A stretch of 64,000 nucleotides of DNA from Octopus sinensis. Taxonomy: Eukaryota. How positions within the stretch are numbered: position 1 is the stretch's first letter; every line of letters starts with the position of its first letter. Below the pieces are notes generated by a model. That model worked only from the letters and a program-made list of their open reading frames with translations, made no database searches and was not told where the DNA came from. The position numbers and the translations under genes are program-made. The stretch covers positions 6,510,001 to 6,574,000 of the forward strand of contig NC_043004.1 of the NCBI RefSeq assembly GCF_006345805.1. The letters are read 5' to 3'. Of this stretch, positions 10,755-55,491 are shown piece by piece.

Positions 10755-12057
10755 TTAATGTCCCCTTTTCTATACCTGCATAGGTTAGATAGAATTTGTT
10801 TTGATATATGGAAGTTTCAAATTGAAGAAAATATCTCAAAACTGTCTGACCTATGCATAAAAAGTGGATGTTAAAATGACAAAAGCATCTTAGCATCCAG
10901 CTGCTAATTTGAAAATTCAAAAAAATCAAGAATTACATATTAGTTTACATTAAATGAGAAAAATCAAACCCAACAAATTTTAGCACATATTTATTACGGA
11001 ATTCCAACAATTTGAGAGATAAGAAAAACCAGTTTTCTTTCTCAAAAGTCCAGGGACAGTCAGACACAGACAGACAGACAAAACAAAACAAGTGTAGTTT
11101 ACTTGCCACATTAACTTATAACAATAATTGCTATAAGTAAATATTACAAATTTTAATGTTTTTCATTAATTGAACATATTTTGCTGAATTGGAATAACAA
11201 GAAAACACCTCAAATATCAATTAAGAACAATTATTTTGTTTTCCACTATAACGCAATGTAAGAAATGAAATGATCAAATAGATAAGTTACCGAACTTGTC
11301 TCGATGTGATTTCAAATTTCATGCAATTTTATATGAAATGTGTGTGTTGTTTTTTTTTTTAGGTAGTGGTGGCTGAATACTCAGATGCATTCTCATTTGC
11401 TTCAGTTTAACCAAGTTGCTGTGGGTTAGGGTACTTAGATTTCAAAGGAAAAGTCAATACAGTTGACCCTCCATGATACCCAAGTGCAGTTAAGAAATGT
11501 TAGACATTGGATAAATAATTTTATAGCACAATAGTCACAGCTGGCCAGAGAGGGGGGAGCTTACTGGTTAAAACATCACTAATTCATGCTGATTATATCC
11601 AAGAAAAAAAAAAAAAAAAAATCAACTCGTATTTACTCAAACTTCAAGATGAGTGAAGGTGTCAGTGGCTATGCAGATAACAATGTTTTTTTTTTTTAGT
11701 TCAAATATGTTAATATTTACACAATTTATGTACATCAGTTCCTTACACTTCATAAATTAATAAAAGGAAATGATTCTGAAAAGAAATTTATAATACTTTG
11801 TAACAAAATTACATGTTGAAGGATTTACAAATTACTTGAATGTGATGCAAGGCTAGCTGGTTTTTTTAAATTTATTAGAAAATTTCTTTACATGATGGCT
11901 ACTTTATGTGTAACAGTTTCTAAATATCCTAAACAGTAATATCAAGATAATTTCACAATATTACAGAAAATCCTGGCAAATATCAAAAGGTTAAATTTTA
12001 TCAAAAATAATTTTAATTTTAGAAATATTGAATTTCTAAATGTCTCAAAGAGACATG

Positions 12058-12330
12058 AGCAGTGGTGGAGCGATAGAGTGGTTGTATACTGTCAACATAA
12101 CGTGACAGCCCCGTAAAGGGAATTACACCACCGCTTTATAGCCCTAGGAAGCATCGACGCTTCCTGTCGGCTTTGACACATTTCCTGTGTCCTTATATTT
12201 GCGAAGGGGAGGCAAGCACCCCCACCAGCTAGGACTAGCAACCTGAAGACATGCATGTTTCTGGGTCTTGCCCGTCATCAGTTCAGGGTAGCAAGTCCTG
12301 CTAGTTGAGATACCTGCCAAGCCTTCGCAA
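12058..12330 (-). mobile_element. GC-richer structured insert carrying the hammerhead (Penelope terminal repeat or retrozyme-like)
   Basis: Abrupt GC-richer island in AT-rich UTR-like sequence. Inverted repeat 12199-12207/12322-12330 closes a long stem around the ribozyme; further hairpins at 12146-12165 and 12175-12191. No TSD seen. Confidence 0.5.
12242..12287 (-). ncRNA. Type I minimal hammerhead ribozyme (Penelope/retrozyme-like)
   Basis: Minus strand: CCUGAA-CUGAUGA-CGGG CAAGA CCCA-GAAAC AUGCAU GUC-UUCAGG. Core intact, 6-bp stem I, palindromic stem III, GUC cleavage triplet, C-A mismatch at the base of stem II. Confidence 0.75.
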
Positions 12331-13541
12331 TTTTAATTTTGTGGAGTTGAAATTTCTTATTTAACATCCCTGAAAATTATTCACTCTTAAACTAAAATAA
12401 AGTAAGCATTTAAAACGGGAAAATATTTGCATCGTTTATAACTAATAATACTCTGAGAAGTTTCATTTTATAATAATATGGGCACATTTACTGAAATTAA
12501 AAGTTGAGCAAGACTTAATGACTCTTGTTATATTCTTTTCAAGAAAAAACAAATCTGGAAATGTAAAATCAGACTAAATTACTCACAAGTTAAATTTATA
12601 GATAGCTTAAAAGTTTCCAAGATAATCAAGAGGATTTGTTATAAAATTGTTTCCATTTCTTGAGCGATTAAATTTCATCTTCCAATAATTTACAAATATT
12701 CCAACAAGAATTCATTAATCTAATTTAACTTTGAAAATTAAATTGCAACTAAAATCTCATCCCATTTGAAAGGCTTCAATTGTCCAAGTTGTGGCAACAA
12801 TTTGCTTTTAGATATAAATTTCATGAACTAAATAAACATGAAAATTTACTAGAAAAGCTCTAATTGATTTCATTGATAAATAGCTTTTACTAAAAAAATT
12901 ATTTACATTAAAAATATATATATAAAGATGAATGATAATGGTGTGAAAAGTTTGAATTTAAAAAAATTATGGTTCTATTCATTTGTTTGATGAAAACTTT
13001 GTAAAGATACTAGAAAAATATTCAAGAAATATTCAGAGAAAAACCACATTTGTTCTGAAAATAAATAATGTGATTCCAGAATTATAAGAATAAAAAGCCA
13101 TACCTCTTCAACATTGATTCATATCACAAAATAATTAAATTCCAGCCAACCCACAGAAAGGGAGGTTCTACTGACTGTTCACCTGACATAGATTTAGTTA
13201 AGTTAAAAAATATATGAAGCTCTAATAGTTAAATAGATGGTGAGTCTCCATCAAACATGTATTTAACTAAATATAAGATCATACATTGATAGTAAAATTT
13301 TCATTTCTAACCGACAACATGATAAAATGAAAGAAACAAAAATTTTTTACAATTCAATGAAGAACATAATTGAATTTCCAAATAGATGATTCTTTTGATT
13401 CTTTGCTAACGCAATACTAACATTCCACACAGCACTTATGTAATAATGACGCAGTAATACTTTTTCCAATAAGTCGTTTTATATCTTTCAGCAAACACTC
13501 AAACACACACAAAAATGAATATTTTAGTGAATCTGTAATAT

Positions 13542-15131
13542 CTAAAAGTTTAACTGCCGTAAACCACTTCGATGAGTTCTTTCTCCAGCCCATGACTTAG
13601 ATTTTCCTCTGAAGTGTTTCAAATCACTGGAATGATCACTGTGTAACATTGGCTTGTAGGTTTGAGGTTCACAAAATTCCTGCAACATAAGAAATAACTT
13701 ATTAACTACAATTTAGAATTAGCAGCATTAAAAACTACTTAATATATATATATAGCACTTACATAGCATTACATTCCAACTTGGGTCTTCTGGATACCAA
13801 TACCTCTCATATATCATCAGTATCGTTTAACATCCGCTTTCCATGCTAGCATGGGTTGTCCTCAGTTAAATCGTCCAAAGCGGACGTTAAACAATGATGA
13901 TATATGAGAGGTATTTGTATCCAGAAGACCGAAGTTGGAAGGTAATGCTATGTAAGTGCTATGGAAGGACCATAGTTAAGCTATCAGTTCGATTATGATA
14001 TGAGTGAGGAGTAATGTGGATCTTGTATGAGCATGTTAAATATATTGAGACAACAAAGCAAAAGTTGTGTGGAATTTTCAAGACATTTGTAAAGAGAAAG
14101 TCTTACAGCTGTTTCTGGGATATCCCTTCATCAGAGACGATGTGAGATGGTTAAATAGAAAGAAATATTTGAGTTCAATATAAGGAGTTATTTTGGAAAA
14201 GGAAGGAAATAAGGAGTATATAGGGAAATAGGAGAATGGATGTAGAAAAAAAGAAAAAATTAAAATATATAAAGATGTTATAGTTGCAGTTCCATTATCC
14301 AAGGAAAGTGGTGTGTAGAAGAGGTAGAAATGCTTCTTGTCTGTGGGATGTAAATTCCAATAGGAGTTCATATTTTGTCGTTACAAATGGAAAGTGTAGA
14401 GATGAAAATTCCATGTACTGTTCATTCAAAGGGGTCTTGTGGTGTGAATGAAAATTTGAGAATGTAGTGGTAGTATTTAGTGGATAGAGAGGGGAGAATC
14501 ATCATCATCATCGTTTAACATCCGTTTTCCATGCTAACATGGGTTGGACGTATGACAGAGGGCCAGCAAACTAGTTGGCTACACCAGGCTTCAATCTTGA
14601 TCTGGCAAAGTTTCTACAGCTGGATGCCCTTCCTAACGCCAACCACTCCGAGAGTGTAGTAGGTGGTTTTACGTGCCACTGGCACGGAGGCCAGAGAGCC
14701 GCTCTGGCAACGATCATGTTAAAATGAAGAGAGAGGTCAAAAGGAAAAGGTGAGAAAAGAAGGAAAGAAAGACGAAGAGAAAATGAAAACTAGAAAATAA
14801 GACAAAATATTAAAGGAGTGTTTGTTGGTGATCAAGATAATATGAGGGGGAGACGAGAGAAGAGTAGGGGAGGGGTAGGAAGAGATAACAATGTAAGTAA
14901 TGAATATGATGAGGTGGGGGTGATGATATGTTAGAATGGTATTAAGGGATGGGTACAGAAAAAGGTATAGGGGTGGTTCTAAACCACAAAACAGAAGGGA
15001 AGAATACTAAGAATGGTCAAGTTTCTATACATAGACTTATGTCTATTGTACTGGCTAATGTGATAGTGTGGGTAGAGGAATCAGAAAGAAAGAAGTGTAC
15101 ATTGATATACGCACACATGCACAAACATGTT

Positions 15132-18890: not shown

Positions 18891-21800
18891 GATGATGATG
18901 ATGATATATATATATATATGAAGGCAATGACCGAGACCTTTGGCATTATGTCATGCTTGGGAAGAAGACCCATCAAGCCGAGCAAAATCGTAGTTGTGGC
19001 AGATACTGGTGTCACGCAAATTGACACCCATGCCGGTGGTACGTAAAAAAAGGCGAAATAATCCAACAGCAGGAAGGAAATTTGTTAGCGACCAAATACA
19101 GAGATAAGAGGCAGATAAATTTTCTATCTACCAATGCACAACCATGTGTAGAGGGAAATGGCACCCTGTTTGTGAACCTCGTTTATAACAGGTACATGGG
19201 CAGTGTGGATCAGCTGAACCAAATGATGGGTTATATTATCCAGTTGGTAGACCAGGTAATAAATGGAGATATTTGGTTTGATATATAGTGAACATGAGCA
19301 TTGTAGATGCATTTATATTATGTACCAAATCAGGAGGGACTCGCAAATGGTGTGACCATCTAAATCAGGAGAGGCTCGCAAACGGTGTGACCATCTGCAG
19401 TTCCAAGCAGATGTAGCAAAGCAGTCGAGGGCAGATTATTCCTCCAGAAAAATGACTGCAGGAAGGAAAAGCAAAACCTGCCAGAGAGATATCCCTCTGA
19501 GTTCAGCCGATCTCCATAAATCAGAAAAGAATCAGGGGTTGCAAAATGCAGTGTCGTTAACGACTACATCTACAAAGAAAAACTCCCAATGGACAGCCAG
19601 TTGAAACTTCTTTCTGATTTGCATTCTGCAAGGTTGCAATATGTAAGTTTCCATGATAGAAATATTGTGTGAATATCATATATATGATTAGATTGTATAC
19701 TTTTCAAATTTACTTCACTTTTATTTTTTATTTACTTGTAATTTTAATTTGCCTGTAAGGTGAGTGACAAGCTTTAATTTGATTTCTATTGTAAATCTTT
19801 ATTATATATGTTCTTGTGTATTCACGTATATGTGTGAGTTGATGTATTTAATTTTCTAGTTTTCTTCAAAAACAAATTCCAATGTTTCAGTTTATTTTAC
19901 CTTTATGGTACACCTGTTCTTCTATGTATTAAATTCAACTGATAATCTAGTGATGTGCACAACTCTTCTTTATTTAAATTTTGTTGTATACCTAATTGAA
20001 TATTAGCTGATGACTCATTTTCTATGGTGATGTTTAAGCAAAATTTAGATATTTTTTATATTTTGCTCAATTTACCTGTATTTATCTATAATTAGAGTTG
20101 CTTTGAGACAAAAGTTATGCAATAGAATTGATTAAGAACCCTTTCTTCAATTATGTTCCAAATATCACGTTAATGTTGATAAATAAAAAAGTTACAGTTG
20201 TTTAATGAAACTAGTCTACATTCATGATTATTTTGGAATTTAATTGAAATTCACGAGGTGTATTTTGGTCAGAAATATTGTAATGAAAGGGTTAAGGCAG
20301 TGCCCCAGCATAGCCACAGTCTAATGGCTCCAAACAAGTAAATCAGATGTGCCACCCAAATACCTTAAGTCACAGAACTGAACACAGATCTTGAAAAGTA
20401 AAACTTACCTTAATATGTCCACCTTCAAATTCATACGGATAGCGACAATCTATTATGGAGTAAGAATTTATTTCATTATCATAGTGCCCGTGTAATAATT
20501 CTTTTACCTGTCAGCAAAAATAAAAAGGAGAGAAGTGTTTGACTAGAAACCATTGAACTCAACCATCTAAAAATGAAAATAGCATGCCATTTGTAAATTT
20601 TTCCAACAATGAGGAGGAAACCAGGTTGCTAGAGTTCTGCGGTGCAAATTAACTTATGGCTTGTAATACTAACATCAGGAAACCTGTCAGTCCCCTATTC
20701 ACCTACTGGTCTGGTGGACACACTAGTCAAATTGACTACGTCCTTGCCAAGAAATGGGAAACATGGCTACTTATAAATGCTAAAACCTTCCAAAGTGAAG
20801 AATACACCCCACAACATAGATTAGTTGTTAGCAACTTCAGGATCAGAAGACAACCAGCATGGAAAAGAAGGGTCTGGAAGCTTAAGGATCCTGTGAAAGG
20901 ACAGATTTAGTAACGTATTACTCAAAGCTTTTGACAAAATAGAGGAGGATATAGCATCGCATGATGTGGAAGACAACTGGAGGTTCCTATGAGACAACCT
21001 GTTGAGAGTTGCTGACCAGATTTGTGGATGGTGCAAAGTCCCCTCTTGACCCAAGGTAATGTGGTGATGGAACAATGTAGTTGTCAGGGCCATTAGGAAA
21101 AAGAAACAGGCCTGGAAGAACAGTGGTAGCAGAGAATTGTATCAGATTGCCAGAAGGGAAGCTAGGAAACAGGTTTACTTAGCCAGAAGGGAAGCAGATA
21201 AAGAAAAATTTGCCAATGTTCTGCATTGTGAGGACCAAAGACTTGAAGTGTTTCATGTTGCAAGACAGTGTGCGAGAGAGAATCGTGATGTTGTAGGAGA
21301 GAAATGTGTCCACATGGATGATGGCTCGCTTACATTTAATGAGGCTGCAAAGCAAGCAACTTGGAGATGCCACTATGAAAGGTTGCTAAATGAAGAAAAT
21401 CTGCCAAATGTCGACTCAACAGAGGAACCAGCTATCTGAATTGACAGATAAAGCAGTTCAGGGTATGAAGACAGGGAAAGCTCTCGGCCCATCAAAAATC
21501 ACCGCAAAGATGCTTAAAATACTTAGTGTTATCTAGAGCCTAGTCACTCGTATAGTCAATCAGGTGATACATGAAGGAGTCATACGCAATAACTGGTGTA
21601 GCAGGACCATAGTCAACTGCTACAAAGGTAAAGGTGATGCATTAAATACAAATAATTACAAAGGTATCAAGTTGTTGGATCAGGTAACGAAAGTCATGGA
21701 GAGGGTCATAGCCCAACTAATTATGGAAAGAGTTTAGACGAAATGCAGTTTGGGTTCGTGCCAAGGAAAAGCACCACTGCTGCTACATTTCTGGTAAGAC

Positions 21801-24800
21801 AACTGCAGAAGAAATACCTAGCTAAAGATAAACCTTTGTACCTGGCTTTCAGTTATGAAATTACATGACTAAATCCAGAAGCCATTTAATCCAGGATACC
21901 AAATATAAAGTTTTAAGATATATAAAATGGACATTTTTATACATGCGAAATATATTTTACAAGAGTTAATCACTGCAATTCTTGCTTTAATTTTTCACCA
22001 CCTTCATTTTAATTTCCATTTTCCCATGCTCACATGGAGTGGACAGAGCGGACGGTTACCACCCGTTGCTAACCGTCACCTGTTCCCAAGTAATGTAATA
22101 TTTCCTCATAATCAGGCATGTTTTCACAAAAGGGTGGAAACAAAGGGACATCATTTGTATGACAATGATACTTGTTTACAACTATAACATGAAGTCAAGG
22201 CGAAGGGACAGTCACACACACCCGCACAAAAACATACGTTGAAGTAATTGAAGTAATTGAGGTAATCAGAGTATGCGACAGAATACTTAAGATTAGATTA
22301 GCGCTTCATCATAGTTTAGCAACTATTATATCAGCCTATGCTCCTCAGTCGGGGCTACCTGATGGACAGAAAGACCGATTCTATGACACTCTACTGCAGA
22401 CTACCTCGTTGACGAACGACAGAGACCTTCTCTTTGTGGCTGGTGACTTCAATGGTCACGTTGGACGACATGCTGGAGGCTTCCACGGCGTACATGGAGG
22501 CTATGGCTCTGGTTCCCGCAACGAGGAGGGAACCAGGCTGCTGGAGTTCTGCGATGCAAATAATCTTATGATTTGCAACACTAACTTCAGGAAACCTACC
22601 AGCCACCTAGTCACCTACCGATCGGGCCAACATACCAGCCAAATTGACTACATCCTTGCCAGGCAAAGGGAGAGAAGGCTACTTATAAACGCCAAAACCT
22701 TCCCAGGCGAAGAATGCACCCCACAACATAGACTGGTAGTTAGTGACTTTAGGATCAGGAGTAGGAGGACAACCAGAAGACGACCAACATGGAGAAGAAG
22801 GATCTGGAAGCTTAAGGATCCTGTGAATGGACAGAGATTTAGAGACATGTTACTTGAAGCCTTTGACGAAGTAGAAGGGGATAGTGTATCACATGGGGTA
22901 GAGGACAACTGGACGTTTCTAAGGGACAACCTGCTGAGAGCCACTGACCAGATCTGTGGCTGGTGCAAAGTCCCCTCTCGTCCCAAGGTAACGTGGTGGT
23001 GGAACAGTGTCGTAGACAGGGCTATTAGAGAAAAGAGACAGACTTGGAAGCACTGGAAGAATGGTGGTAGCAGGGAATTGTATCAGACTGCTAAAAGGGA
23101 AGCTAGGAGACAGGTCTATCTAGCCAGAGGGGAAGCAGATAAGAAAAAATTTGCCAATGTTCTGCGCCGTGAGGACCAAAGACTGGAGGTGTTTCGCGTT
23201 GCAAGACAGTGTGTGAGAGAGAATTGTGATGTGGTGGGAGAGAAGTGTGTTCGCATGGAAGATGGTTCACTTGCGCTAAACGAGGATGCAAAGAGAGAGG
23301 CTTGGAGATGCCACTATGAAAGGTTGCTGAATAAAGAAAATGAATGGGATAAAGAGAGTCTGCCGAACGTTGACCCAACAGAGGGACCAGCTATCAGGGT
23401 TGATAGTTCCTTAGTAGCTAAGGCAATTAGAAGCATGAAGACAGGGAAAGCCCCAGGCCATCAGGTATCACTGCAGAGATGCTCAAAATATCTGGTAGTG
23501 TCGGCTATAGCCTAGTCACCTGTATAGTTAATCAGGTGATACATGAAGGAGTCATACCCAATGACTGGTGTGCAGCATAATAGTCAACTGCTACAAAGGT
23601 AAAGGTGATGCCCTAGATACAAATAATTACAGAGGTATCAAGCTGTTGGATCAGGTGATGAAGGTTACAGAGAGGGTCATAAGCCAACTAATTAGAGAGA
23701 GAGTTAGTTTAGATGAGATGCAGTTTGGTTTCGTGCCAGGGAAAAGTACCACTGATGCTATATTCCTGGTAAGGCAGCTGCAGGAGAAATACCTAGCCAA
23801 AGATAAGGCCCTGTACCTGGCTTTTGTTGACATGGAGAAAGCTTTCGACAGGGTCCCCCGATCCCTCATATGGTGGTCAATGAGGAAACTAGGAATAGAA
23901 GAATGGTTAGTGAGAGCTGTGCAAGCCATGTACAGGGACGCTGCTAGTAAAGTGAGGGTTGGAAATGAGTACAGTGAAGAATTCCGGGTAGAGGTAGGGG
24001 TCCACCAAGGCTCAGTCCTCAGCCCCCTCCTATTTATCATAGTCCTCCAGGCAATAACGGAGGAATTCAAGACAGCTCCTCTATGCTGATGACCTTGCTC
24101 TAATTGCTGAGTCATTATCAGAACTGGAGAAGAAGTTTCAGGTGTGGAAGCATGGTTTAGAATCGAAGGGCCTTAGAGTCAACCTAGCTAAAACCAAAGT
24201 CATAATAAGTAGGAAGGTAGACAAATCACAAACGCCTTCAGGTAGATGGCCCTGCTCGATCTGTAGAAAAGGTGTAGGTAGAAACTCTATAAGATGCACC
24301 AAGTGTAAGCTATGGACACATAAGAGGTGCAGCAATGTCATAGGAAGGCTAACTAGGAAGATGGTTTTTGTATGTGGCAGATGCTCGGGAGCATTAACCT
24401 CTGAAAATCTGCAGAAAACAACTTCCGTCACTTTCCAGGGGAAAAAACTAGAAGTAGTTGATAGCTTCCGTTATCTTGGTGACCAAGTAAGTAGTGGGGT
24501 GGGTGTGCTGAAAGTGTAACGGCTAGAGTAAGAATAGCCTGGGCAAAGTTTAGGGAGCTCTTACCTCTGTTGGTGACTAAAGGCCTCTCGCTCAGAGTAA
24601 AAGGCAGACTGTATGATGCATGTGTACGAACAGCCATGCTACATGGCAGTGAAACATGGGCCGTGACTGCTGAGGACATGCGTAAGCTCGCGAGAAATGA
24701 AGCTAGTATGCTCCGTTGGATGTGTAATGTCAGTGTTCATAGTCGACAGAGTGTAAGTACCTTGAGAGAAAAGTTGGACCTAAGAGGAATCAGATGTTGT

Positions 24801-27371
24801 GGCAAGAGAGACGATTGCGCTGGTATGGTCATGTGGTGAGAATGGATGAAGATAGGTGTGTGAAAAAGTGCCACACCCTGGCAGTTGAGGGGACCTGTGG
24901 AAGAGGTAGACCCAGGAAAACCTGGGTCGAGGTGGTGAAGCACGACCTTCGAACTCTAGGTCTCACCAAGGAAATGACCAGAGACCGAGGCCTATGGAAG
25001 TATGCTGTGCGTGAGAAGACCCGGCAAGACCAGTGAGAACAATCAAAATCAAATCATATATCAGAAAGCAGGGGTTAAGTGACCCATCTGTTCGTGTCCG
25101 CTGTCAGCCTCGTCTGGCACCCGTGCCGGTGATACGTAAAAGCACCATTCGCTCATGGTCGTTTGCCAGCTCTGGCCCCATGTCGGTGGCACGTAAAAGC
25201 ACCATCCGTTCGTGTTCGTTGCCAGCCTCGCCTGGCCCCGTGCCGGTGACACGTAAAAGCACAGTCCGTTCGTGGCCGTTGGCCAGCTCTGTCTGGCCCC
25301 GTAAAAGCACCATCCGTTCGTGGCCATTTGCCAGCTCTGTCTGGCCCCGTGTCGGTGGCACGTAAAAGCACCATCCGTCCGTGTCCGTTGCCAGCCTCGG
25401 CTGGCCCCCGTGCCGGTGACACGTAAAAGCACCGTCCGCTCGTGGCCGTTTGCCAGCTCTGTCTGGCAACCGTGTCGGTGGCACGTAAAAGCACCATCCA
25501 TTCGCGTCCGTTGCCAGCCTCAGCTGGCCCCCGTGCTGGTGACACGTAAAAGCACCATCCGTTCGTGGCCGTTTGCCAGCTCTGCCTGGCCCCGTGTCGG
25601 TGGCACGTAAAAGCACCATCCGTTCGTGGCCGTTTGCCAGCCTCGACTGGCCCCCGTGCCGGTGACACGTAAAAGCACCGTCCGCTCGTGGCCGTTTGCC
25701 AGCTCTGTCTGGCAACCGTGTCGGTGGCACGTAAAAGCACCATCCGTTCGCGTCCGTTACCAGCCTCGGCTGGCCCCCGTGCCGGTGACACGTAAAAGCA
25801 CCGTCCGTTCGTGGCCGGTTGCCAGCTCTGTCTGGCCCCGTGTCGGTGGCACGTAAAAGCACCATCCGTTCGTGTCCGTTGCCAGCATCGCCTGGCCCCG
25901 TGCCGGTGACACGTAAAAGCACCATCCGTTCGTGGCCGTTCGCCAGCTCTGTCTGGCACCTGTGCAGGTGGCACGTAAAAAACACCCACTACACTCGCGG
26001 AGTGGTTGGCGTTAGGAAGGGCATCCAGCCGTAGAAACACTGCCAGATCTGACTGGGCCTGACGAAGCCTTCAAGCTTCACAGACCCCAGTTGACCCGTC
26101 CAACCCATGCTAGCATGGAAAACGGACGCTAAACGATGATGATGATGATGTATATATGTATATCATGTGACCGACCAGGCTATCAGATGTTGCTACACAC
26201 CGCCAGTTACAATGCGCTTCGCACTGTTTTAGTCATCAATTGACGCCAACCTGCTAGCTAAGCGAGCAGGCCAACAGAAGAAAGAGTGAGGGAAAGTTGT
26301 GGCGAAAGAGTACAACAGGGATCCCCCCCCCCCACCACCCCATGCTGGAACCTCATGGAGCTTTAGGTGTTTTCGCTCAATAAACACTCACAATGCCTGG
26401 TCTAGGAATCGAAACCGCGATCCTACGATCAAGAGTCCACTGCGCCATTGCGTCTCTATGTATGTATGTATATAGAAATAAAGAGGTCAGATCCTGTACA
26501 CTATAGATCTCTATTGCAAGCAGACCTGGACACAATGCAGCAGTGGATCATGGACTAGCAACTCAAGCTGGCTGTGGATAAATGTACCACCAAGCATTTT
26601 AGGAGGGGAAACCCAGCAGCCACCTACTCCCTCCACAACACTAATCTCAAAAAGTCTTCGTGTGAACATGACCTGGGTGTTATTGTCAACAGTGATTTGC
26701 GTTGGACAATTGTCAAGAAGGCTGAGGGTGTCTTGGCATCACCCACCAAATCCTTTGTGAGTCGCTCTCCGACTATGTATCTGCGGCTTTATATAGCTAT
26801 GGTAAGACCTCACCTGAAATTTGCATCACCGGTCTGGAACCCCTATCTTGCCCAGGATATCAATCGTCTGGAAGCCGTTCAGCAACGTGCAACCAAAACC
26901 CTCCATCAGGCATTTGCCATATTCTGAACGCCTTACGTCCCTGGGCATGGACACATTGAAACTCTGACGTCTGGCAGCTGACTTGGCAGACACCCATAAA
27001 ATTATCAACCATCTTACAAACAATAACTCTGAGCACCTTTTCAAACTCCACCCATCTAACACCCGTGGACATATTTACAAAGTCAGAAAACAGCACAGCT
27101 CCCATGACTTTAGGAAACATTTTTTCACGCTGAGAGTTGCTGAAGCATGGAACAAACTGCCGGCATCAGTTGTTAGATGTCGGAGCACTGCATCCTTCGA
27201 AACTTCCATGCTTTCTGAGATTCGCCAACACTACACCTGATTTTCTCCCCTCCATACACATACAATGTTCGCTTTCCAGACATTTGTACATTACTGCATA
27301 TATTTTATACGCACTTTCTGACAAGTTGTGGTGCACCTGAGCACTGTATACAATAATTTCATTATTATTAT

Positions 27372-46406: not shown

Positions 46407-49400
46407 ATTATATAATGTAAAAATACCTAGATATGAAAATATAAAATCGTTTCTCATGGGAGGGCAATCAAACTCACCTATATTCCTCGGAAGGTGAATA
46501 GAACGGAGTCGGAGAGTCTTTAAAACAACCTGAGAAATACAATTATAAGGAAAGAAAAATTAAATTCTTAAAGCTAATTTAAAATGAAATAAATCGTGAA
46601 GAAAACAAATGAATTTCCCCTAGTGTAGTTAAACCACACTAAGATATCTAATACATTATAAACATCAATCATATAGACTCATGCAAGCAGATGAAGCCAA
46701 TACCATACAAACTACTTAGAATATCTTTCTTATAACAAAGAAACTCTAGAATATATTGTCATAAAAGACACTTTTATTAAATCGATAACGCTGAAAAAAA
46801 AATTTTTATCATTGATCACAAAAATTTGAAAATGATATTTGCAATGTAAGTTCGCAATTCAAAAACTGAATTCTTGATACCTGTCCCACTTTAAAATCTT
46901 GAAGAAATTAACATTAAAATTACCTGATAATATTGGCCCACTGTCCACGGTATTTAGCGATAAACGTCTTTTGGGAGTTGACCTGCAAACATATATTAAA
47001 CCATATTCACTCTGTAAATAAATAATCAGTTCGAAAAAGTCAGAATATTTATTTATTTTGATCTAAATCGTTAGCGCGCCGGACAAAATGTTTAGTGGCA
47101 TTTCTTCTGGCTCCTTACGTTCTGAGTTCAAATACCGCCCAGGTTAACTTTAACCGCATCCTTTCGGAGCCGATAAAATAGGTAACAGTTGAGCACTGGG
47201 GTCGATGTAATCGACTAACCTCTTCCCCATACAACTGGCTTGCCTTGTATCGAAATGTAAAGGTATTGACCTTTTCAAACATATACTCCAACAATTAAAT
47301 CCACCTTAACAGAACAGTAAACTACCGAAGCGTTTTGTGAGGTTACAGCCATCGGTTACCTCTCGATATCAGATTTGAAAATCGGGATAAAATTTCAAGT
47401 ATTGCTCGGTGACAACGCATAACCGGATACAAACTCCCATTGCTTAAAGGGCGTCATAACCGTTTCGGCAAGATCGTTCTTTCAATTTAAATTACATATG
47501 CTAGGAAAATAATTTTACTGGCAATTTACTAAGTTCCTACAGTGTTGTTTCAGTAAAAAGAAATTTTAAAAACTGCCTTCAAAGTACCACGATTCATAAA
47601 ATAGGAAAAGCGTATTTTTTTAACCATAATTTTTTTTTTAAATACTCTCCAAAGTTTTCGGGCTTTTCCCCCCTTTATTTCTTTTTCTTCTTTTACAATT
47701 TTACCTCCTCCACTTTCATAACCTTTTCTTTCCCATAAAAGTATGGGACTTCGAAGGACAGACAGCCATTCCAAAAATCTACCATTCATACTAACAGCTA
47801 TAACTTAATCAAAATCAGGAGATATAAAGAACCAGTTTAATTGTCCAATAAGATTTCAAAAACAGAATGACTCTTGTTAACAGCATCTCTTAAAAGGACA
47901 ATGACCCCGAAAGAAACGCATAAAGACTGACGTTACTCAATGCAAGTGTCTCTTGAATAAAACTTTAAAATCTGAAAGAATTTTCTTTTGTTCAGTTGTC
48001 TGTGGTCATGCTGGAGCATCGCTTTAAAGGGTTTTTAGTCGAAGAAATCGACCCTAGAGCCTATTCCTAGGCTCTAGTCATAAGTACTAGAGCCTAGTAC
48101 TTATTCTATCGGTCGCTTTTGCCAAACCGTTAAGTTACGGGGATCTATTCAATAGATCCAGTTACGGGGGCACACACACACACACACCAGCGATTGTCAA
48201 GCGATAACAGGGGGACAGAAACACAGAACACGTTTTTTTTTTTAAATTCTCTATTTATTGCCTCTTCTTTCTTTCTGCCGAAGAGCGTAAGCTGGAAACG
48301 TAAGACTTGCCATTTTTTCCCGAGTGTTAAAAACTAATACGCATGCGTTGCTACAAATGAAGGAATGCTACACACATGTATATACATACACACACACACA
48401 CGGCGGGCTTCTTTCAGTTTCCGTCTACCAAATCCATTCGCGAGGCCTTGGTCAGCCACGCAATGGGAACTGAACCCGGAACAATGTGATTGGGCAGCAA
48501 CCTTCTTACCACACAGCTACAATGTCTTCCAGTCCTTCAAATGAAGGACTTAACTGGCATTTAAGCTTTTATGAGCAAAAAATTTAATAAAAAATACACC
48601 TTTGAACAAATTTTAAGGAATTTCAATAAATGTTAAACCAATAATGTGGAGCAACCAGAAAGTTCATAGTTTTAAGTTGAAAATAGCGAAGTTTGCCTTC
48701 AACGAAATAGTCAAACCGATAACAATTTCATCCCCCACCACCTACATTCTGAATTTCTAAAATTCAAAACATATAAATCTGAAGAAACTACAAAAAAGGT
48801 TCCCCGATGGTGGGGGTAATACATTCGAAAACATAAGTGCGAAGGTTTGGTTGTTATTTCTAGGAGGACCAACAGCCACATATAGGTTCCCTCGCAAGGA
48901 TCGTATTTGGAATGCGGTGAACAGGGTGCGGTAATGGCGAGTTTTCAATTGCAGTACTTAGCGAATGTTTAATCTTTTACTTGTTTCAGTTAGTTATCTT
49001 TTACTGCAATCATACTGAAACACCTTGAAGGGTTTAAAGTCAAATAAATCAACCCTGTACTTATACTATCGCTCCCTTTTTGACAAACAGCTAAGTTACG
49101 AGGTGCGTAATAAGAGGTGGGGGGGAACAAACATACAGTCGCTGCCCCAGGATAATATTTACACAAAGTGCCGCGCAGTGAAACTGAACCCGATACCTCG
49201 TAGCTGTAAAACCAGTTTCATAACTACATAGCCATGCCTGCGCCTGTTAAATCACTCAGCTTCATTGTTCGACATTTTAATATTTCTAGTGCAAAAGGCG
49301 GTGGAGCTGATTGAATCGTGAGCACGCCAGATAAAATTGCTTAGCGGCTTCTCCAACATCAGGTTCTGGTTCAAATTCTACTGAGAGTCGATGAAATAAG

Positions 49401-51973
49401 TACCAATTGAGCACAGGAGTTGATATACTCCTCTTTCCCTCTCCCTCAAAATTTCAGGCTTTGTGCCTAGACTAGAAAGGTTTATTTCTAGTCCAATTAC
49501 TTTTCATTAGATATGAACTTACATTCCACAACTCATTTTACATGTATTGCTCTTTATTGTTTGAATTTCAAAACAGATTACAATACTAGCTTTTTAAGAT
49601 ATATATAGGTCATGACCATGGCAAGTTCTGTTCAGAAAGATTCCTGCACGACGAAGTTGATGACAATAAAAAAAGTGTTCATTTTGAAAAACGTGAAATA
49701 AGAGCACAATGCGTGATTTTTTTAAACAGTAACATCAAATAAATGGTAATGTTAAAATAGATTTATAAGTATAATGTCCTGAAATGAGCCATTGGATGAC
49801 CAAGGTGATCAATTTGAGTAGCAAGTTTTCCAACGGGAGACAAATTGTCATAAGGCTGAGAGACCACTGGAAGAGAGGATATCTTAAACAATTACACCTA
49901 TACAGCTGCTAATTTACCATTCTCTTATCATTTATCTTGGAAATTGTGGTTAAAATAATTGCTCATTCAATGCAATGTTCTTTAGGGACAAAGTTTCAAA
50001 TCAAGAGATTCTAGTTCAAATATTAATTGGTGAGCAATTTCAAATTTGAGCCGGAGGAGTTACTCCATTGCTCAGATATCAATTGAAACTTTACAGCAAC
50101 TTTTACCAATTTACGAACGTAGTCGACGTTTATGGCGCGAATTAGTTATTCAAACAGGTGACATAATTACAAGTGCATGTAAATAGAGGACAAAACTGGA
50201 TATGTACAATTCGTCATCAGTTAAGAGCCGACTTGTTCAGTAGCATATATACTCACAAGTCATGGTCCTGCATGAGAACACGACTTCATTTACTGACGGA
50301 TGCTGAACAAAAAGGAAAATGACAGTAAAATATAAAAAAAGTTTAAGACTGAAAGTTAGTCATGACTGGTTATGAACCCTAACGGATTTTTCTTTCTTTA
50401 AATCTTACAAGTAAGCTTTGCAATATAAAAAAAAATATTTCCTCCCAAATTCGTCGTTTTTGAAGAACGGGTTTATCAAAATATTTTGTTTCCAAGCTGA
50501 GAAACAAAGAAAGCAATGATTAAGCCGGTTATATGAATCAGTACATAGTAATAGATGGGATATTTTTTTTAAAAAAGTAGTTTCAGCAAAAAAATAACTA
50601 GGAATTTTTTTAAATTTAGCGAATTACTTTTGACTAAAGAAATTCAATTTTTTAATGAATTTTCATTTGGCAATAAGTCAAGAATAATAATACAGAACAC
50701 GAGACCAGAGAATTTTTAAAGCCCTGCTCAAAACTAGATCTTGAAAAAAATATTGCATCACTTAATGTAATCAACTTAGTTATGAAATATACCAATTGTA
50801 TTTCGTTAGAAAGGGTTTTTATATTGCAAAATAGATAACTTCAGAGTAATTAGATTTGAAATCAATATACATAATAAATTCCGATATTTAGAAAGTACTA
50901 AACTTAAAAACTAAGGACAAAAAAAGAGAAGGCTGGATTTTCTTATTTAATATTTTATTGGGTGATTATTATGTGGCCAAGAAAGTAAAGCGCTCCGGTT
51001 AACTCAATGTATTTCAACATCTATGTTCCTCTCCAAATCCTGCCGAGATCGACTTTTTTTAATTTTATTTTTAAGCGTCGATAAAGTAGAATCGATCCAA
51101 CTGACTTGAACCATTTAGTGAACTAATCAATTTTCAAACTTTGATAAGCTACATATAGGGCAGGCGGAGATGGGGGGGGGGAGACAATTTCAAATTTGAA
51201 ACCCTGACATTGTTTGTCGGTATTCCGAAAACAAACCACTGGTGAGAGGACAGTAAAGCAACACTTTCCTGGAGAAATGGAAAGAGAGAGAACGAGAGAG
51301 AGAGAGAGAGTAAAGCAACCCCCTTTATATCCAAGACTTAGGCCAGAACTAATTGAAACGTGATCAGTGTCAGTAGCGAGAGAGAGAGAGTGAGAGGAAT
51401 TCACACCGATTGGTTGACACCAAACAAACCAACAACTTTAAATTCGTTGTCTTTAGGGAAATTAATTCACACATGCAACAATAATACACCAAATAAAACG
51501 TGCTAAGACACGTGAATATAACACTTTCCGTTTATGAATGTCCTCAAATTAATTTTACTCAAAATAAATATACAAAACGCAACTAAAAATAGAAAAACAA
51601 CGCTAGAAAAAAGTTTAGTGTCCAAAATTAAAAGATATATTAAACAGGTAAATCATGCTAATTTATAAATTACTTTTGGTAATTATACAGTAAGCGTTAG
51701 ACATACAAGGAATAAAATAAAAATTATTCGTCAATTCTAAATAATTTCGAAGAGTTTCATCAAGAGAGGCAACAAAAAGAAAACAAAATTAAACACCATA
51801 TGATGAAGTTTAATTATAAAAAGAAAAATAATTTACCTGTCAGTTCTAAGTTCACTTAGGTTCATCGCCAGATTTGTAACAGGGGAATGCAAGTTTCCAT
51901 TGTTTTCGCCTTTAGTTATCGACGAATTACAATCTAAAGCCATTAGTTGTAACGATCTTCCAAAATTAGACAT
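13542..51973 (-). CDS. CDC25: M-phase inducer phosphatase Cdc25/string, complete, 14 exons, 470 aa
   Basis: Exons: 51973-51837, 46982-46924, 46529-46478, 42179-42155, 36116-35985, 34377-34276, 34161-34048, 30449-30315, 28431-28327, 28220-28158, 20507-20409, 17849-17716, 16096-15979, 13679-13542. All GT-AG with consistent phases; total 1413 nt. Motifs: [29 protein letters not shown], catalytic [40 protein letters not shown]. Confidence 0.96.
13752..13962. repeat. Long inverted repeat (about 87-bp arms, 36-nt loop)
   Basis: 13752-13840 is the reverse complement of 13877-13962 apart from about 5 substitutions and one small indel. Confidence 0.9.
19055..20291 (+). mobile_element. piggyBac transposase C-terminal remnant and right end
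   Basis: [13 protein letters not shown]...[17 protein letters not shown], then after a frameshift RPGNKWRYL; ends aaaggg|TTAA (20292-20295). Confidence 0.85.
20603..21850 (+). mobile_element. Older degraded RTE LINE fragment (endonuclease end to RT start)
   Basis: Colinear with 22515-23830 ([30 protein letters not shown]); many stops. Confidence 0.9.
22236..26149 (+). mobile_element. RTE-clade LINE, 5'-truncated and frameshifted, with VNTR-containing 3' UTR and (GAT)n tail
   Basis: APE endonuclease ([25 protein letters not shown]); RT ([37 protein letters not shown]); ORF ends ...[12 protein letters not shown] at 25036; about 5 frameshifts or deletions. Followed by (CAAAT)n, tandem array, hairpin and (GAT)n. 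Antisense within a Cdc25 intron. Confidence 0.93.
25085..25981 (+). repeat. GC/CpG-rich minisatellite, 15 x about 60 bp with A/B higher-order structure
   Basis: CGTAAAA recurs 15 times about 60-62 bp apart (one shorter unit); two unit types mostly alternate. Confidence 0.95.
26490..27375 (+). mobile_element. CR1-like LINE 3' fragment (RT C-terminus and tail)
   Basis: [55 protein letters not shown]; (ATT)n tail. Confidence 0.9.
28729..28935. mobile_element. Mariner-type MITE
   Basis: TIR-like tacgagaggatgctgataagttc / ggaacttttcagcacctc; an inverted sister copy lies at 40228-40446. Confidence 0.7.
33491..33886 (+). mobile_element. tRNA-derived SINE family A, well-preserved example (many further copies in window)
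   Basis: A box TGGCTGTGTGG, B box GGTTCAGTCCC, internal (GT)n, (AAAGAGT)n tail. Other copies include about 1690-2080, 3571-4110, 10130-10480, 38793-39428 and 47990-48500. Confidence 0.85.
35135..35907 (-). mobile_element. Internally deleted Tc1/mariner element with both TIRs
   Basis: TA|cagggtgggtgaaaagtaa ... ttactttccaaccaccctg|TA; minus-strand transposase C-terminal remnants ([19 protein letters not shown]...IP). Confidence 0.85.
36350..36915 (+). mobile_element. Cluster of tandem RTE 3'-end fragments
   Basis: Hairpin-(GAT)n tail, then two RTE ORF-terminus-like segments ([11 protein letters not shown] near 36541; [14 protein letters not shown] near 36680) and a second tail. Confidence 0.7.
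38830..39044 (+). mobile_element. SINE family B nested in a SINE A head, 18-bp TSD
   Basis: ggtaagaagtttgcttcc at 38812-38829 and 39045-39062. Confidence 0.9.
40228..40446. mobile_element. Mariner-type MITE (same family as 28729-28935, opposite orientation)
   Basis: TIRs aggggatgctgaaaagt / aacttttcagcaccccct; interior matches the reverse complement of the other copy. Confidence 0.7.
41095..41960 (+). mobile_element. Old CR1/L2-like LINE remnant (APE endonuclease)
   Basis: [13 protein letters not shown]...[13 protein letters not shown] motifs; broken frames. Confidence 0.75.
42964..43440. mobile_element. TTAA-flanked MITE containing a tRNA-SINE (family C, 42999-43249)
   Basis: TTAA|ccctttagcatt ... 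aatgctaaaggg|TTAA. SINE has A box TGGCTTAGTGG, B box GGTTTCGATTCC and TSD tattaggccaaa (42987-42998, 43250-43261). Confidence 0.88.
44230..44640 (-). mobile_element. RTE 3'-UTR fragment with a few diverged VNTR units
   Basis: Reverse (GAT)n tail and CCATGCTAGCATGG hairpin, followed by decayed ttttacgtgccac units. Confidence 0.8.
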
Positions 51974-52299
51974 TTGAAGAGTTTAAACGATGGTGCTCAG
52001 CTGAAATTCGATATATTTACGATATAACAAGCAAGAACTACTCAAACTAGACTTTCTGGTAACTTCAACAGAAATTTCTTGTTAACGCTGTCCTCGTGTC
52101 TCTAAATCTCTCCAAGAGGGTTTAATACCGATTATTTCAACCACAAAGAAGTGTTTAGTAAATAGCTGTAGGCGTGATTAAATAATTTTTAAAAAAAAAA
52201 CTCATTCAACCTTATTTTTTTTTCTACAAACTAAAGAGGCACAGGCGTTTTGTGGGGGGTTTTTTTGTTTGCTATAGGGTAAATAAATAAACGTTACAA

Positions 52300-52700
52300 A
52301 TAGTTATTATCGCAGATGACGTGTAAATGTACATTCGTGGTTTTTAACGCCAATTCGGTGTGCTAAAAGAGCACTAGGGTGGCGACTGGCCTAAGATTAT
52401 CTTGGTCAACTAACAAGGATTACTTAGAAAACGTCGGCGCCACAATTTTCAAACATAAATTTATTCGAGCCAATCAACAACCAGCATTTACACAGCTCCC
52501 CTTATTGCATATAGTTATACACACTTGAAAATTAAAATCTCCAGAAAAATATATTTTGTTCATTTACACCCGTCTTAATTGTGATTTCGATTCTAAATCT
52601 AGACTTTATATAAAAAAATAATTCGATGTTTTATTTTGATTTTGAGTCCGAAGCGCATGCGCCATGTTTGGCGGGAACTTATCAGTTGATTACCAGTCAT
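52300..52700. promoter_or_regulatory. Cell-cycle promoter motifs between divergent Cdc25 and SLBP-like genes
   Basis: E2F TTTGGCGGGAA 52667-52677, NRF1 palindrome GCGCATGCGC 52653-52662, CCAAT 52350-52354 and 52470-52474, CHR TTTGAA (minus) 52448-52453 next to GGCGCC. Confidence 0.65.
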
Positions 52701-55491
52701 ACAAATATTAACATGGATTCGTTATCGGCTGCCACTTCCATTCATAATGTATCTTTTCCTGATAATAATAGAATGACCACTCCGCGCAGGAACAAGTTCG
52801 TATTATCACATCAGTTTTTTTATCGTATATTCCTTGTTGCATGCGAAACTGAAATCTTACTGCTCTGCTGAAATTTATTTCAGTCACTTGACAATCTTTC
52901 ATCAACCTTTACAGTTTATATTATTCTATTTTAGCGGCATGCTACCAAAGCCTTTCACCGCATATTACCTTCTTGAGATCTATTAATTTCACATTTTTAT
53001 TTATTTCACACAATGGTTATTAATTTAGATATAATTGAAAATAGGAATTACAGTGCGAATTGGAATTCTTCTGAAACTCGATCGCTTCGAAATATTTGTT
53101 TTAAGCTCGCAAACTTGTTTCCCTACAAGTGGATGGAACGATCGGATCCAGAAGGTTCTTTGTACATAATCCTTTATAGTTTAGCTTTCTTGTGTATTAA
53201 CTGCTAACACTGAAGTCCAGCGATTATCCATATCGCGCCATCTTAATACTCTCCCCTCCTTTTTGAATCCATTTCGACATTGTTTATGTTTTTCTTCATC
53301 TGGCGCTCTTTGCTGATCGAATGAAATTCTACAACGTAACGTTCAGGACCAACGGCATAAATTTAGGCGGTTATTTATCAAACCACGAAATCTTCAATTC
53401 GGTTTTTATAATTACAAACAAACATTTTTTATTTTATTGTTTTAGAAAAGAAAATAATGACAAATAATTAAAAAAAAAAAAAAAAGAAAGCACAGGAGAG
53501 GATGAATTCATTAAACAATATTAAAAATCTGTTTCCTCGAGAACAATATCAAAGAAAAGTTTACGAATCAATTGAGACAAAAAAAATTGGGTTGTTTTTT
53601 TTTCGCGGGATAATGTTATAAGCGATCGTTGAAATATTAATCAAAGGTCACACATCTATGAAAGGGGTCAACCGATAATTGTGTGGAAGCTCGATTAATA
53701 TATTATCCCGAATTTTGGCATCTCCTTCCACTTGTGGATTTTTTAAAGTTCTTATTTTTCAGGTTATAGAAGCACTCTCAATGATGTCTTTATTTTTACT
53801 ATAGGATGGTCTCGCGGCGTAGCGCAATTAATTCTAAGAAAGAATCAATTCCAGGACCAGAACTTTCTCGACCATGGAATTTGAACTTTGCACAGAGTGC
53901 CGCAAGGTATTTTATCTAACACTCTGCCAAACGGTTCAACTTGAAGGGCAGACTCTATAAAGCCATAGAATATTTCTTCCGGCTCTTCAAATCCCGCCAA
54001 ACTCAACCCTGCTTTTTATCCCTCCGGCATAGATAAAATAAAATACCTATGCTGTGAACAATAAGCTAGTTGACTGCGATGGGTTCGCAAAATCTGTGTT
54101 CAGTCGAGGATCATCATTGCATTTAATCCTTCCAAGATCAATATCGTGAATACACGAGTTAATCTAGTCATCTGTACACATCGTCTAAATTTGACTAGTC
54201 TCTTATTTTATTGTCATAATAAAAACGATTCCGGAATAAATTGTAAAGCCCAAGCACTAGGATTTTGTTAACTTAGTTTGCGTGTATATACTGCTGCAAG
54301 AACATGTTTTATAAGATTTTACTTTTTTTTTTATATTTCAATTACTGCTATAAAGAATAACACAGGTTCAGGCGTGAACATCTAGTTTTTTGTTTTTTTC
54401 TATACATACATATGGTTTAAATGAAGATGGTACATTTTCACTTGAAGATATTCGGTTTCCATTTCTTTAGCAACAAATCTTTTGCCTTTGTTTCAATAAA
54501 CCACTTTAATAGGAAATACACATCCACATATATATATAGTGATCATTTTGCGTCCGATTTTCCTGGTAGCATGTTTGACGGGCCCTCAGTGTGCGCTCGT
54601 GTTTTAATGCGTATTCTGGATTTCAACGTGGAAAATTAATTAAAATGGGAAGCAACTCGAATTTGAAATCTTATGGCGATTTGGATAGTTTGAAGAATAA
54701 CTGATTGGAAAATAAAAAGCTTATGTTTATGAACTGTCAGTGTTTGTGGAAAGGAACTTAGAAATTACAATAAGATCAAGTTCTGAAAAATTCCATTGTA
54801 TCCCTTTTTGCATTTGTAATGAATATATTCGTCACCATCCACCGGTTTGAGAGTCGGTGTTTCGGTCTAGACATAATCGTCAAGGGGAGAGAAATAAACA
54901 TTATATTGAATCAACATATTTTGTTATCATTAAGCACCAGGCTGACGTTAGTCGGAAAAAACTATGATTAAAGATGTTCCAGTTGTGACTACCTCATCTT
55001 TTTACGGGTATTTAGAACTATATTATCGAATATGTGATCTGAGAATATAATTGACGAAAAGGTGAAATAATTTTTAGAGAATCTGTTGCTTGTATTGCGC
55101 TTATGTGCAGTTCGGTATTTAGCTTCGCGTTTCCGAATTCGGGGTCGATAAATGGGTACCAATTAGATGTCGGAATACTTTTTGATCGAGTGTGACCATT
55201 TTATGGAATTGGTCTTGTTGAATAGCAGAAATTTTCTGTCACCTGTGCTCTAATTAATTAATGTATGGATATTGCTCATTTTACTTTACATCTCCTATAG
55301 GAATGAAGTATGAAAACCTTTTTACTTCATAAATATAAAAGAATCTGATCTGATATTGTAGTTATCTTGTCACATAATATTTTGTTATATTCAATTAACC
55401 AAGTTAATACCTTACTTGTCTGAATTTTCTCCCATAGCTCTTGTTTCACCTGGTAACTTTTCTTCATTGTTTCAGAGATGATCGAAGACAA

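Follow-up and report, generated by a model that had tools for sequence, protein, structure and literature searches.

The hammerhead motif lying on the minus strand downstream of the Cdc25 stop codon is genuine. In all likelihood it is a ribozyme of the usual retroelement sort and not a device for the control of Cdc25. It probably forms part of a solitary, structured, non-coding retroposon of 308 bp, retrozyme- or SINE-like in character and inserted in the sense orientation, which may be what is left of a larger retroelement that carried a hammerhead. The motif is referred to below as HH1, a second copy in the last Cdc25 intron as HH2, and the whole 64-kb stretch of DNA analysed as the window. 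The features on which the argument depends are as follows.

12242..12287, minus strand: HH1, hammerhead copy 1, minimal motif (sequence read, descriptor match, fold energies)
12198..12330, minus strand: 133-nt hairpin extending helix I to ~45 bp and topped by the three-way junction of the hammerhead (folding)
12021..12328, minus strand: putative inserted element, 308 bp, GC-rich and highly self-paired (composition, fold)
12329..12340, minus strand: upstream copy of the 12-mer AAAATTAAAATT, read as target-site duplication, containing ATTAAA 12337-12332 (12-mer count)
12009..12020, minus strand: downstream copy of AAAATTAAAATT, read as target-site duplication, containing the twin ATTAAA 12017-12012 (12-mer count)
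14100..14138, minus strand: HH2, hammerhead copy 2, in the last Cdc25 intron (core scan, descriptor match)
13542..13712, minus strand: last coding exon of Cdc25, stop codon at 13544-13542 (ORFs, tblastx match to a related transcript)
11871..11876, minus strand: first AATAAA past the stop, a candidate polyadenylation signal (1666 nt downstream)

The hammerhead motif and the element around it

Read on the minus strand, HH1 consists of a helix I in which CCUGAA (12287-12282) pairs with UUCAGG (12247-12242), the core CUGAUGA (12281-12275), a helix II made up of C(12274), GGG, the loop CAAGA, CCC and A(12262), the bases G12-A13-A14 (12261-12259), a helix III formed by the 10-nt palindrome ACAUGCAUGU (12258-12249), and C17 at 12248, so that the predicted cut falls between 12248 and 12247, after GUC. 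The core is complete (C3 U4 G5 A6 N7 G8 A9, G12 A13 A14, A15.1-U16.1 and H17; 12281-12275, 12261-12258, 12249 and 12248), with all 11 conserved hammerhead bases and three correctly placed helices. The layout is that of type I, in which helices II and III are closed by loops and helix I is open; helix II counts nominally as 4 bp (GGG/CCC plus C.A) and has a 5-nt loop, helix III comprises 2-3 bp alone or a 10-bp palindrome as a dimer, and helix I runs for 6 bp up to an internal loop (UAC/UU) and from there into a long duplex, ~45 bp in total. The motif and cut site given in the preliminary description match this reading base for base; the sequence also bears out a type I hammerhead in complete form on the sense strand of Cdc25, ~1.25 kb past the stop codon, and the AGGACU/AGUCCU extension proposed there for helix I pairs on folding. 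Helix III is likewise a short palindrome, as in retroelements, and the motif sits within what appears to be a retroposed element flanked by a target-site duplication of 12 bp.

The boundaries of this element are defined by composition and by the sequence at its edges. The GC content of the 308-bp island is 49% overall (47-56% per 100-nt window), compared with 19-31% in the flanks. The 12-mer AAAATTAAAATT occurs only twice in the 64-kb window, once at each edge of the island and with 12/12 positions identical, and we read these copies as a target-site duplication; an AT-rich 12-mer may instead be a chance repeat, or a terminal redundancy resulting from the copying of a circular template. The element has an observed/expected CpG ratio of 0.55, higher than the 0.25-0.36 of its flanks; together with the intact duplication, this suggests that the insertion is fairly recent and not ancient. 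Target-primed reverse transcription of an A-ended RNA at a LINE endonuclease target leaves an AAAA at the start of the duplication. Read on the hammerhead strand, AAAATTAAAATT begins with AAAA, thus suggesting that the RNA intermediate was likely the hammerhead-sense strand. The only reverse transcriptase of the window belongs to LINE fragments with an AP-endonuclease domain and RVT_1, found in a Cdc25 intron at ~20.6-24.5 kb.

The RNA structure of the element is specific to the hammerhead strand. The 133-nt hairpin, which forms the 5' part of the island and in which the internal loop lies 6 bp from the hammerhead core, folds at -67.9 kcal/mol as minus-strand RNA (z = -6.6) and at -49.5 kcal/mol as plus-strand RNA, the latter folding less well because several of the pairs are G-U. 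The whole 308-nt element folds at -128.5 kcal/mol (z = -6.8), whilst its complement, at -107.5 kcal/mol, is 21 kcal/mol worse.

Several points were counted against a retroposon. The HH1 locus holds a single unit, whereas retrozymes are defined by tandem repeats; no second copy of the element was found in the window when positions 11501-13000 were compared with it by blastn; the element gave no Rfam match in a slice search at E<=10; and neither a poly(A) tail nor a tRNA-like head was found within it. No reverse transcriptase ORF lies beside the element, a six-frame translation of the 308 bp found no protein relative at E<=10 among 5.8 billion proteins, and exact look-ups of the two ORFs which cross it gave no record. 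A short A tail would be masked by the AAAA which opens the duplication. As no terminal inverted repeats were seen by eye at the ends of the insert, its identification as a MITE was rejected.

The motif was also judged against chance, using a descriptor which required CUGANGA, GAAA and H17 as well as minimum helix lengths of 4 bp (I), 3 bp (II, where a closing mismatch was allowed) and 2 bp (III). It matched twice in the 64-kb window, compared with a mean of 0.031 in 1000 dinucleotide shuffles, none of which (0/1000) held two or more matches; with helix I set to at least 6 bp, the expectation from shuffles falls to 0.003 per window. A strict version of the descriptor, demanding G10.1-C11.1, matched nowhere in the window. 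In the entire window no hammerhead model (RF00163 and related) reached the Rfam gathering threshold, nor was a hammerhead found around HH1 when slices of 501 nt and 106 nt were searched at E<=10. The only Rfam matches were at noise level, to snR40 and mir-52.

The preliminary description had named the lack of a covariance-model match as grounds for giving up the hammerhead, and formally this is what the Rfam search returned, but calibration on motifs of the same kind shows that ground to be a weak one. At 15 metagenomic loci with hammerhead-like motifs carrying A at position 11.1 (A11.1, as in HH1), several of which have a perfect helix III of 4-10 bp and a helix I of 5-8 bp, not one reached the Rfam gathering level for a hammerhead (0/15), the best scoring 23.1 bits against a threshold of 34 (locus L048). 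Since well-formed metagenomic A11.1 hammerheads also fall short of the Rfam thresholds, the silence of Rfam on HH1 is a weak negative, and published surveys of retroelement hammerheads have relied on structure descriptors, not covariance models (PMC4209133, PMC8557442). A chance resemblance with no ribozyme origin could draw on this silence, and on the consideration that a genome of gigabase size would hold some random matches to the descriptor; however, the expectation of only 0.003-0.03 per window, the embedding of the motif in a discrete insert and a second copy that shares a pattern expected 7.7e-7 times per window (see below) effectively refute it.

The second copy and the closing pair of helix II

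HH2, which lies 1.86 kb upstream of HH1 on the same strand, is the sole other site found in a generic core scan of the window. It reads GUCU CUGAUGA A GGG AUAU CCC A GAA ACAGCUGU A AGAC and shares with HH1 the pattern CUGAUGA-N-GGG-(4-5 nt)-CCCAGAAAC, a total of 19 bases. Because base composition predicts this pattern only 7.7e-7 times per window, the two copies are related rather than coincidental. The remainder of the motif differs: helix I is GUCU/AGAC in HH2 and CCUGAA/UUCAGG in HH1, different sequences which nevertheless both pair; helix III is the 8-nt palindrome ACAGCUGU in the former and the 10-nt ACAUGCAUGU in the latter; and loop 2 and H17 also differ. No homology between the copies was found beyond the motif, and the flanks of HH2 contain no repeat, no long hairpin and no recognisable element boundaries. 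The possibility that HH1 and HH2 mark the two ends of one element was rejected, as HH1 has its own duplication and the last Cdc25 exon lies between them. A heterodimer of the two was likewise rejected, the palindromes pairing with one another at -3.5 kcal/mol compared with -13.3 and -11.1 kcal/mol for the self-duplexes. Fast ribozymes in introns abort splicing. An efficient ribozyme at HH2 would sever the pre-mRNA, and it is therefore argued that hammerheads of this family are slow in this context.

Neither copy has the canonical G10.1-C11.1 pair at the base of helix II; C12274 stands opposite A12262 in HH1, and the corresponding bases in HH2 are A.A. In the preliminary description the C.A was attributed to CpG decay of a former C-G pair, an origin which we reject: A11.1 is common to both copies in the window, and natural A11.1 hammerheads exist elsewhere. 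As both copies have it, an A11.1 ancestral to the family is more parsimonious than CpG decay, and judging by the two sequences it looks like a family trait rather than a lesion. When public metagenome contigs were scanned for the shared pattern, 75 loci were recovered, and at least 10 of these can be recognised clearly as type I hammerheads that have long helices I and III and C.A, A.A or G.A at 10.1/11.1. In one case (L051/L057) two copies, one A.A and the other C.A, lie 2.57 kb apart and adjoin type I restriction-modification genes; they flank two ORFs, which a tyrosine-recombinase-like motif leads us to read as putative integrases. At another A11.1 locus (L072) there is a type-P5 twister ribozyme 1.1 kb away. 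A further group, from eukaryote-like, ORF-poor contigs, has U-A at 10.1/11.1 and a short palindromic helix III. Two termite-gut-like contigs of this group (L003, L033) contain no ORF of 150 aa or more, and a link to Penelope-like elements could not be established from them. The same scan of species-representative prokaryotic genomes gave 13 matches, none of which was a complete type I hammerhead by the descriptor.

G10.1-C11.1 is the most conserved pair after A15.1-U16.1, and yet natural hammerheads with U.U at these positions are active (Perreault et al., 2011; PMC3088659). The axolotl retrozyme hammerhead HHR_Amex2 likewise has U.U as the first pair of helix II, and it performs better as a dimer than as a monomer, in which form it is weak (PMC7229834). 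HH1 and HH2 resemble both in having a non-Watson-Crick 10.1/11.1 in an otherwise complete motif, and differ in that the pair is C.A or A.A. As mismatched hammerheads exist and some of them are active, the C.A pair is regarded as a handicap and not as proof of a dead ribozyme.

Folding, life cycle and relation to known elements

As a monomer, the hammerhead fold of HH1 lies 3.2 kcal/mol above the minimum-free-energy fold, in which GACG pairs with UGUC in place of helices II and III. When two copies are folded together they form a double hammerhead with a 10-bp intermolecular helix III, predicted at -30.5 kcal/mol compared with 2 x -11.2 (-22.4) kcal/mol for separate molecules; on these calculations the palindrome favours action as a dimer. 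Since the copy is solitary, the C.A pair non-canonical and the competing fold 3.2 kcal/mol better, self-cleavage of HH1 is expected to be slow at best, and the cleavage products would be expected to remain annealed through ~45 bp.

A life cycle for such an element can be proposed from these features. The element would have inserted in the sense orientation ~1.2 kb past the Cdc25 stop, duplicating the AT-rich target AAAATTAAAATT. In its active state, two element RNAs would pair through the 10-nt palindrome ACAUGCAUGU to form a double hammerhead, with cleavage after GUC, and the long helix I would keep both ends of the unit-length RNA together for a tRNA-type ligase. Viroids also hold their ends adjacent for ligation into circles. 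Ends held side by side are the ligation geometry for circles in retrozymes as well (PMC7229834). A LINE- or Penelope-type reverse transcriptase would then copy the RNA into the genome. The ribozyme would thus serve the RNA processing of the element itself and, at Cdc25, would be a lone passenger; if Cdc25 transcripts were affected at all, this would be a side effect of the insertion and not an evolved control.

The closest likenesses are to several groups of retroelements, with none of which the element agrees in full. One is Sm-alpha of Schistosoma, which Ferbeyre et al. reportedly described in 1998 as a dispersed SINE-like element of ~300 bp with a type I hammerhead whose helix I is interrupted by an internal loop ~6 bp away from the core; it is also said to have a canonical G10.1-C11.1 pair and polymerase III promoter boxes. 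The present element is similar in being a short retroposon of ~300 bp, with a type I hammerhead and a helix I internal loop at the same distance. It differs in that no tRNA-like or promoter feature was found in the 308 bp, and in having C.A instead of G10.1-C11.1. As regards SINE features in general, a duplication is present, whilst a tRNA-like head and an Rfam match are lacking.

Animal non-LTR retrozymes, which include a mussel family (Cervera and de la Pena, 2020; PMC7229834), are 170-400 nt long and highly self-paired, are present in molluscs and have duplications, if any, of more than 4 bp. The 308-nt unit is in keeping with these in its length, its non-coding and self-paired RNA, its type I hammerhead, its mollusc-like genome, the length of its duplication and its ends lying in a duplex suited to ligation. 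Its GC content of 49% is at the upper edge of the <45-50% described for retrozymes. The difference lies in the number of units: retrozymes consist of at least two in tandem, allowing excision of a unit, whereas by blastn within the window there is only one here.

In animals, type I hammerheads combine 6 bp of helix I and 4 bp of helix II with a helix III of 1-2 bp that has a palindromic loop. HH1 fits this layout, except that its helix I extension is unusually long; copies in animals are mostly solitary and probably derive from truncated elements (PMC4209133). With the minimal hammerheads of Penelope-like elements (Cervera and de la Pena, 2014; PMC4209133) it shares a short palindromic helix III implying a dimer (both ACAUGCAUGU and ACAGCUGU are of this kind), possibly an unpaired or additional base following A9, mostly solitary copies and a low expected activity as a single motif. 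Those hammerheads, however, keep G10.1-C11.1 and have a helix II of 6-8 bp and a helix I of 4-5 bp, compared with 3 bp plus C.A and ~45 bp in HH1. C12274 could be the extra base of the Penelope type, yet an extra A then precedes G12, which is undescribed for those elements (PMC4209133). Neither an ORF with a Penelope-like reverse transcriptase and GIY-YIG domain nor a pseudo-LTR was found near HH1 or HH2. As the element lacks tandem repeats, such an ORF or pseudo-LTR, and a promoter head, it is not filed as a retrozyme, a Penelope-like element or a SINE, and is described instead as a solitary retrozyme- or SINE-like hammerhead retroposon which would work like retroelement hammerheads.

Cdc25 context and alternative explanations

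In addition to the last coding exon, minus-strand exons of Cdc25 were recognised at ~17879-17715 (HCEFSSER) and near 16104 (GGYKAFFEK). The best matches to a C-terminal query were molluscan, with 55-64% identity, together with other invertebrates, no cephalopod being named; an exact look-up of the last-exon ORF gave no record. There is no AATAAA or ATTAAA from the stop codon (13544-13542) to the ATTAAA at 12337-12332, and the first AATAAA is that at 11876-11871, just as had been noted by eye. With the insert and the duplicated target removed, this AATAAA would lie 1346 nt past the stop. The best match at transcript level, and the only related Cdc25 transcript found (L076, a Logan contig from run SRR32924703), is 79% identical in the last exon by tblastx and has a 3' UTR of 1.58 kb ending at AATAAA; no hammerhead core follows its stop codon, and its 3' UTR cannot be aligned to the window. 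By analogy with this UTR, the AATAAA at 11876-11871 is a reasonable signal, and its use would place the element inside the UTR, a location which is plausible. The earlier placing of the motif in or just behind the Cdc25 3' UTR, on the sense strand, stays plausible, whilst the ATTAAA that had been taken as a signal is only duplicated target. The accompanying suggestion, that the ribozyme removes the distal UTR or acts as a terminator behind a weak ATTAAA, found no evidence here: the element has the character of an insertion, its duplication is 12/12 intact and that ATTAAA has a twin at 12017-12012.

A role of HH1 in the control of Cdc25 3' ends is possible, but a co-opted ribozyme is an unlikely explanation of the locus. 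Acting in cis, it would cut Cdc25 transcripts and so take off their poly(A) tail and the distal 3' UTR, or open an entry for a 5'-3' exonuclease and thereby aid termination behind the ATTAAA. The sense orientation, the position between the ATTAAA and the first AATAAA, the long UTR of the related mRNA and the complete core are all compatible with this, and natural hammerheads with a non-Watson-Crick partner of A11.1 look intact. However, the signature of a fairly recent insertion argues for a passenger, as does the reduction of the ATTAAA to duplicated target; with its weak helix III, a lone copy should depend on a partner (PMC4209133, PMC7229834; cofold), and the ~45-bp helix would keep the products together after cleavage. 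Moreover, there are thousands of such motifs across invertebrate genomes, so that chance alone should put one into a long UTR. The likeness to the rodent Clec2 3'-UTR hammerhead, which is sense-stranded and downstream of the coding region, is also limited. The Clec2 ribozyme is reportedly discontinuous, kept in several mammals and active, and is said to have been shown by Martick et al. in 2008 to be able to lower mRNA, whereas HH1 is a predicted ribozyme, continuous and derived from an insertion. We consider it very unlikely that HH2 and HH1 both act on the Cdc25 pre-mRNA, with HH1 trimming or destabilising long-UTR transcripts, or with the pair excising a 1,856-nt segment (14103-12248) that includes the last exon and has ends which a tRNA ligase could circularise. 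If true, this would amount to ribozyme control of a mitotic trigger, and to the first functional animal hammerhead family with a non-Watson-Crick 10.1/11.1 (A.A or C.A).

It is possible, though doubtful, that HH1 is a catalytically dead fossil of a retroelement hammerhead, in which C.A (12274/12262) has replaced the highly conserved G10.1-C11.1 and the competing fold dominates. The empty result of the strict descriptor, the absence of an Rfam match and the 3.2 kcal/mol advantage of that fold all agree with such a history, and as single motifs minimal Penelope-like hammerheads are barely active, if at all (PMC4209133). The occurrence of A11.1 in both window copies points instead to a family trait. 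Against a dead fossil there are also the at least 10 metagenomic type I hammerheads which carry A11.1 alongside long perfect helices I and III, one of them close to the twister ribozyme, and the activity of natural U.U mismatches at the same positions (PMC3088659, PMC7229834). It is highly improbable that the near-perfect 133-nt duplex matters as a dsRNA substrate, for small-RNA processing or adenosine deamination, with the hammerhead-like apex being incidental. Whilst the z-score of the hairpin and the restriction of its G-U pairs to the transcribed strand could be cited in its favour, the apex has all of the core bases and helices of a hammerhead and HH2 shares the core without any long hairpin; no microRNA family scores meaningfully, the mir-52-like score being on the opposite strand and at noise level (11 bits, E = 4.2).

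The retroposon thus stays the favoured explanation and, if it is right, the locus adds to the solitary retroelement hammerheads of invertebrate genes and is chiefly of value for annotation. The A11.1 closing-pair variant, common to both window copies and to well-formed bacterial or phage hammerheads from metagenomes, is a little-described one, a full-text search finding no paper that joins the term 'A11.1' with 'hammerhead', and as standard covariance models miss all such copies the class is probably under-counted. Through inserts of this kind, long 3' UTRs acquire strongly structured RNA and a possible site of cleavage, and a dosage-sensitive cell-cycle gene with a sense-strand ribozyme in its UTR would provide a cheap natural test of in vivo cleavage by solitary dimer-type hammerheads.

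Repeats and base composition of the window

Several repeats were noted in the window, and are listed here by window position.

13752-13819 / 13895-13962: 68-nt inverted repeat, 96% complementary, arms 75 nt apart
13813-13858 / 14501-14546: direct repeat of 46 nt, its copies 91% identical
20656-24519 (+): non-LTR retrotransposon fragments (Exo_endo_phos_2, RVT_1, PHD-like finger)
25100-26050 and 60200-61250: tandem arrays, GC-rich, with repeat units of about 61 and 123 bp

The inverted repeat lies directly upstream of the last Cdc25 exon and the direct repeat brackets the region of HH2, the second hammerhead motif of the window; both are probably members of a further family of short repeats. 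The non-LTR fragments sit within a Cdc25 intron and appear to be duplicated: the ORFs near 20.6-21.7 kb resemble those near 22.4-24.5 kb. The two tandem arrays have in common the motif GGTGGCAC(G/A)TAAAAGCACCATCCG, and give rise to spurious long ORFs on both strands. CpG observed/expected climbs to 0.84-0.97 at 48001-56000, possibly marking an unmethylated region, for instance a promoter. Over most other parts of the window it is 0.22-0.45, with values of up to 0.66 where repeats are dense, at 24-28 kb.

A third 9-mer match and a Cdc25-related transcript

The 9-mer CCCAGAAAC occurs a third time in the window, at 10165-10157 (-), in antisense to a short repeat whose plus strand bears a tRNA-like B-box motif. 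Neither CUGAUGA nor a helix II is present at this site. Since about 0.5 occurrences of a given 9-mer are expected per window, the match was judged to be due to chance.

A relative of Cdc25 is represented by a polyadenylated transcript, a Logan contig of 3734 nt (L076, run SRR32924703) with a 3' UTR of 1.58 kb. The coding region of this contig is divided over two called genes, 251-1702 and 1686-2126, thus suggesting that the assembly carries a frameshift.

Hammerheads with A11.1 in metagenomes

Well-formed type I hammerheads were found at ten metagenome loci (L036, L040, L042, L043, L048, L049, L051, L056, L057 and L072), in all of which helix II opens with A.A, C.A or G.A, that is with A at position 11.1, and not with G-C. 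The neighbourhoods of three are as follows.

L051, 2334 and 4902 (-): hammerhead pair, 2.57 kb apart
L057, 1078 and 3646 (+): hammerhead pair, 2.57 kb apart
L072, about 11725 (-): A11.1 hammerhead variant
L072, 12807-12861 (-): type-P5 twister ribozyme (62 bits), same contig, ~1.1 kb from the hammerhead

In the L051/L057 pair one copy has A.A and the other C.A, and between them lie two ORFs, 299 and 281 aa long, read as putative integrases from a tyrosine-recombinase-like motif, with type I restriction-modification genes adjoining on what is a bacterial contig.

None of the ten reached the Rfam gathering score, and a full-text literature search found no paper containing 'A11.1' and 'hammerhead' together; the A11.1 variants may be an under-counted class of hammerhead.
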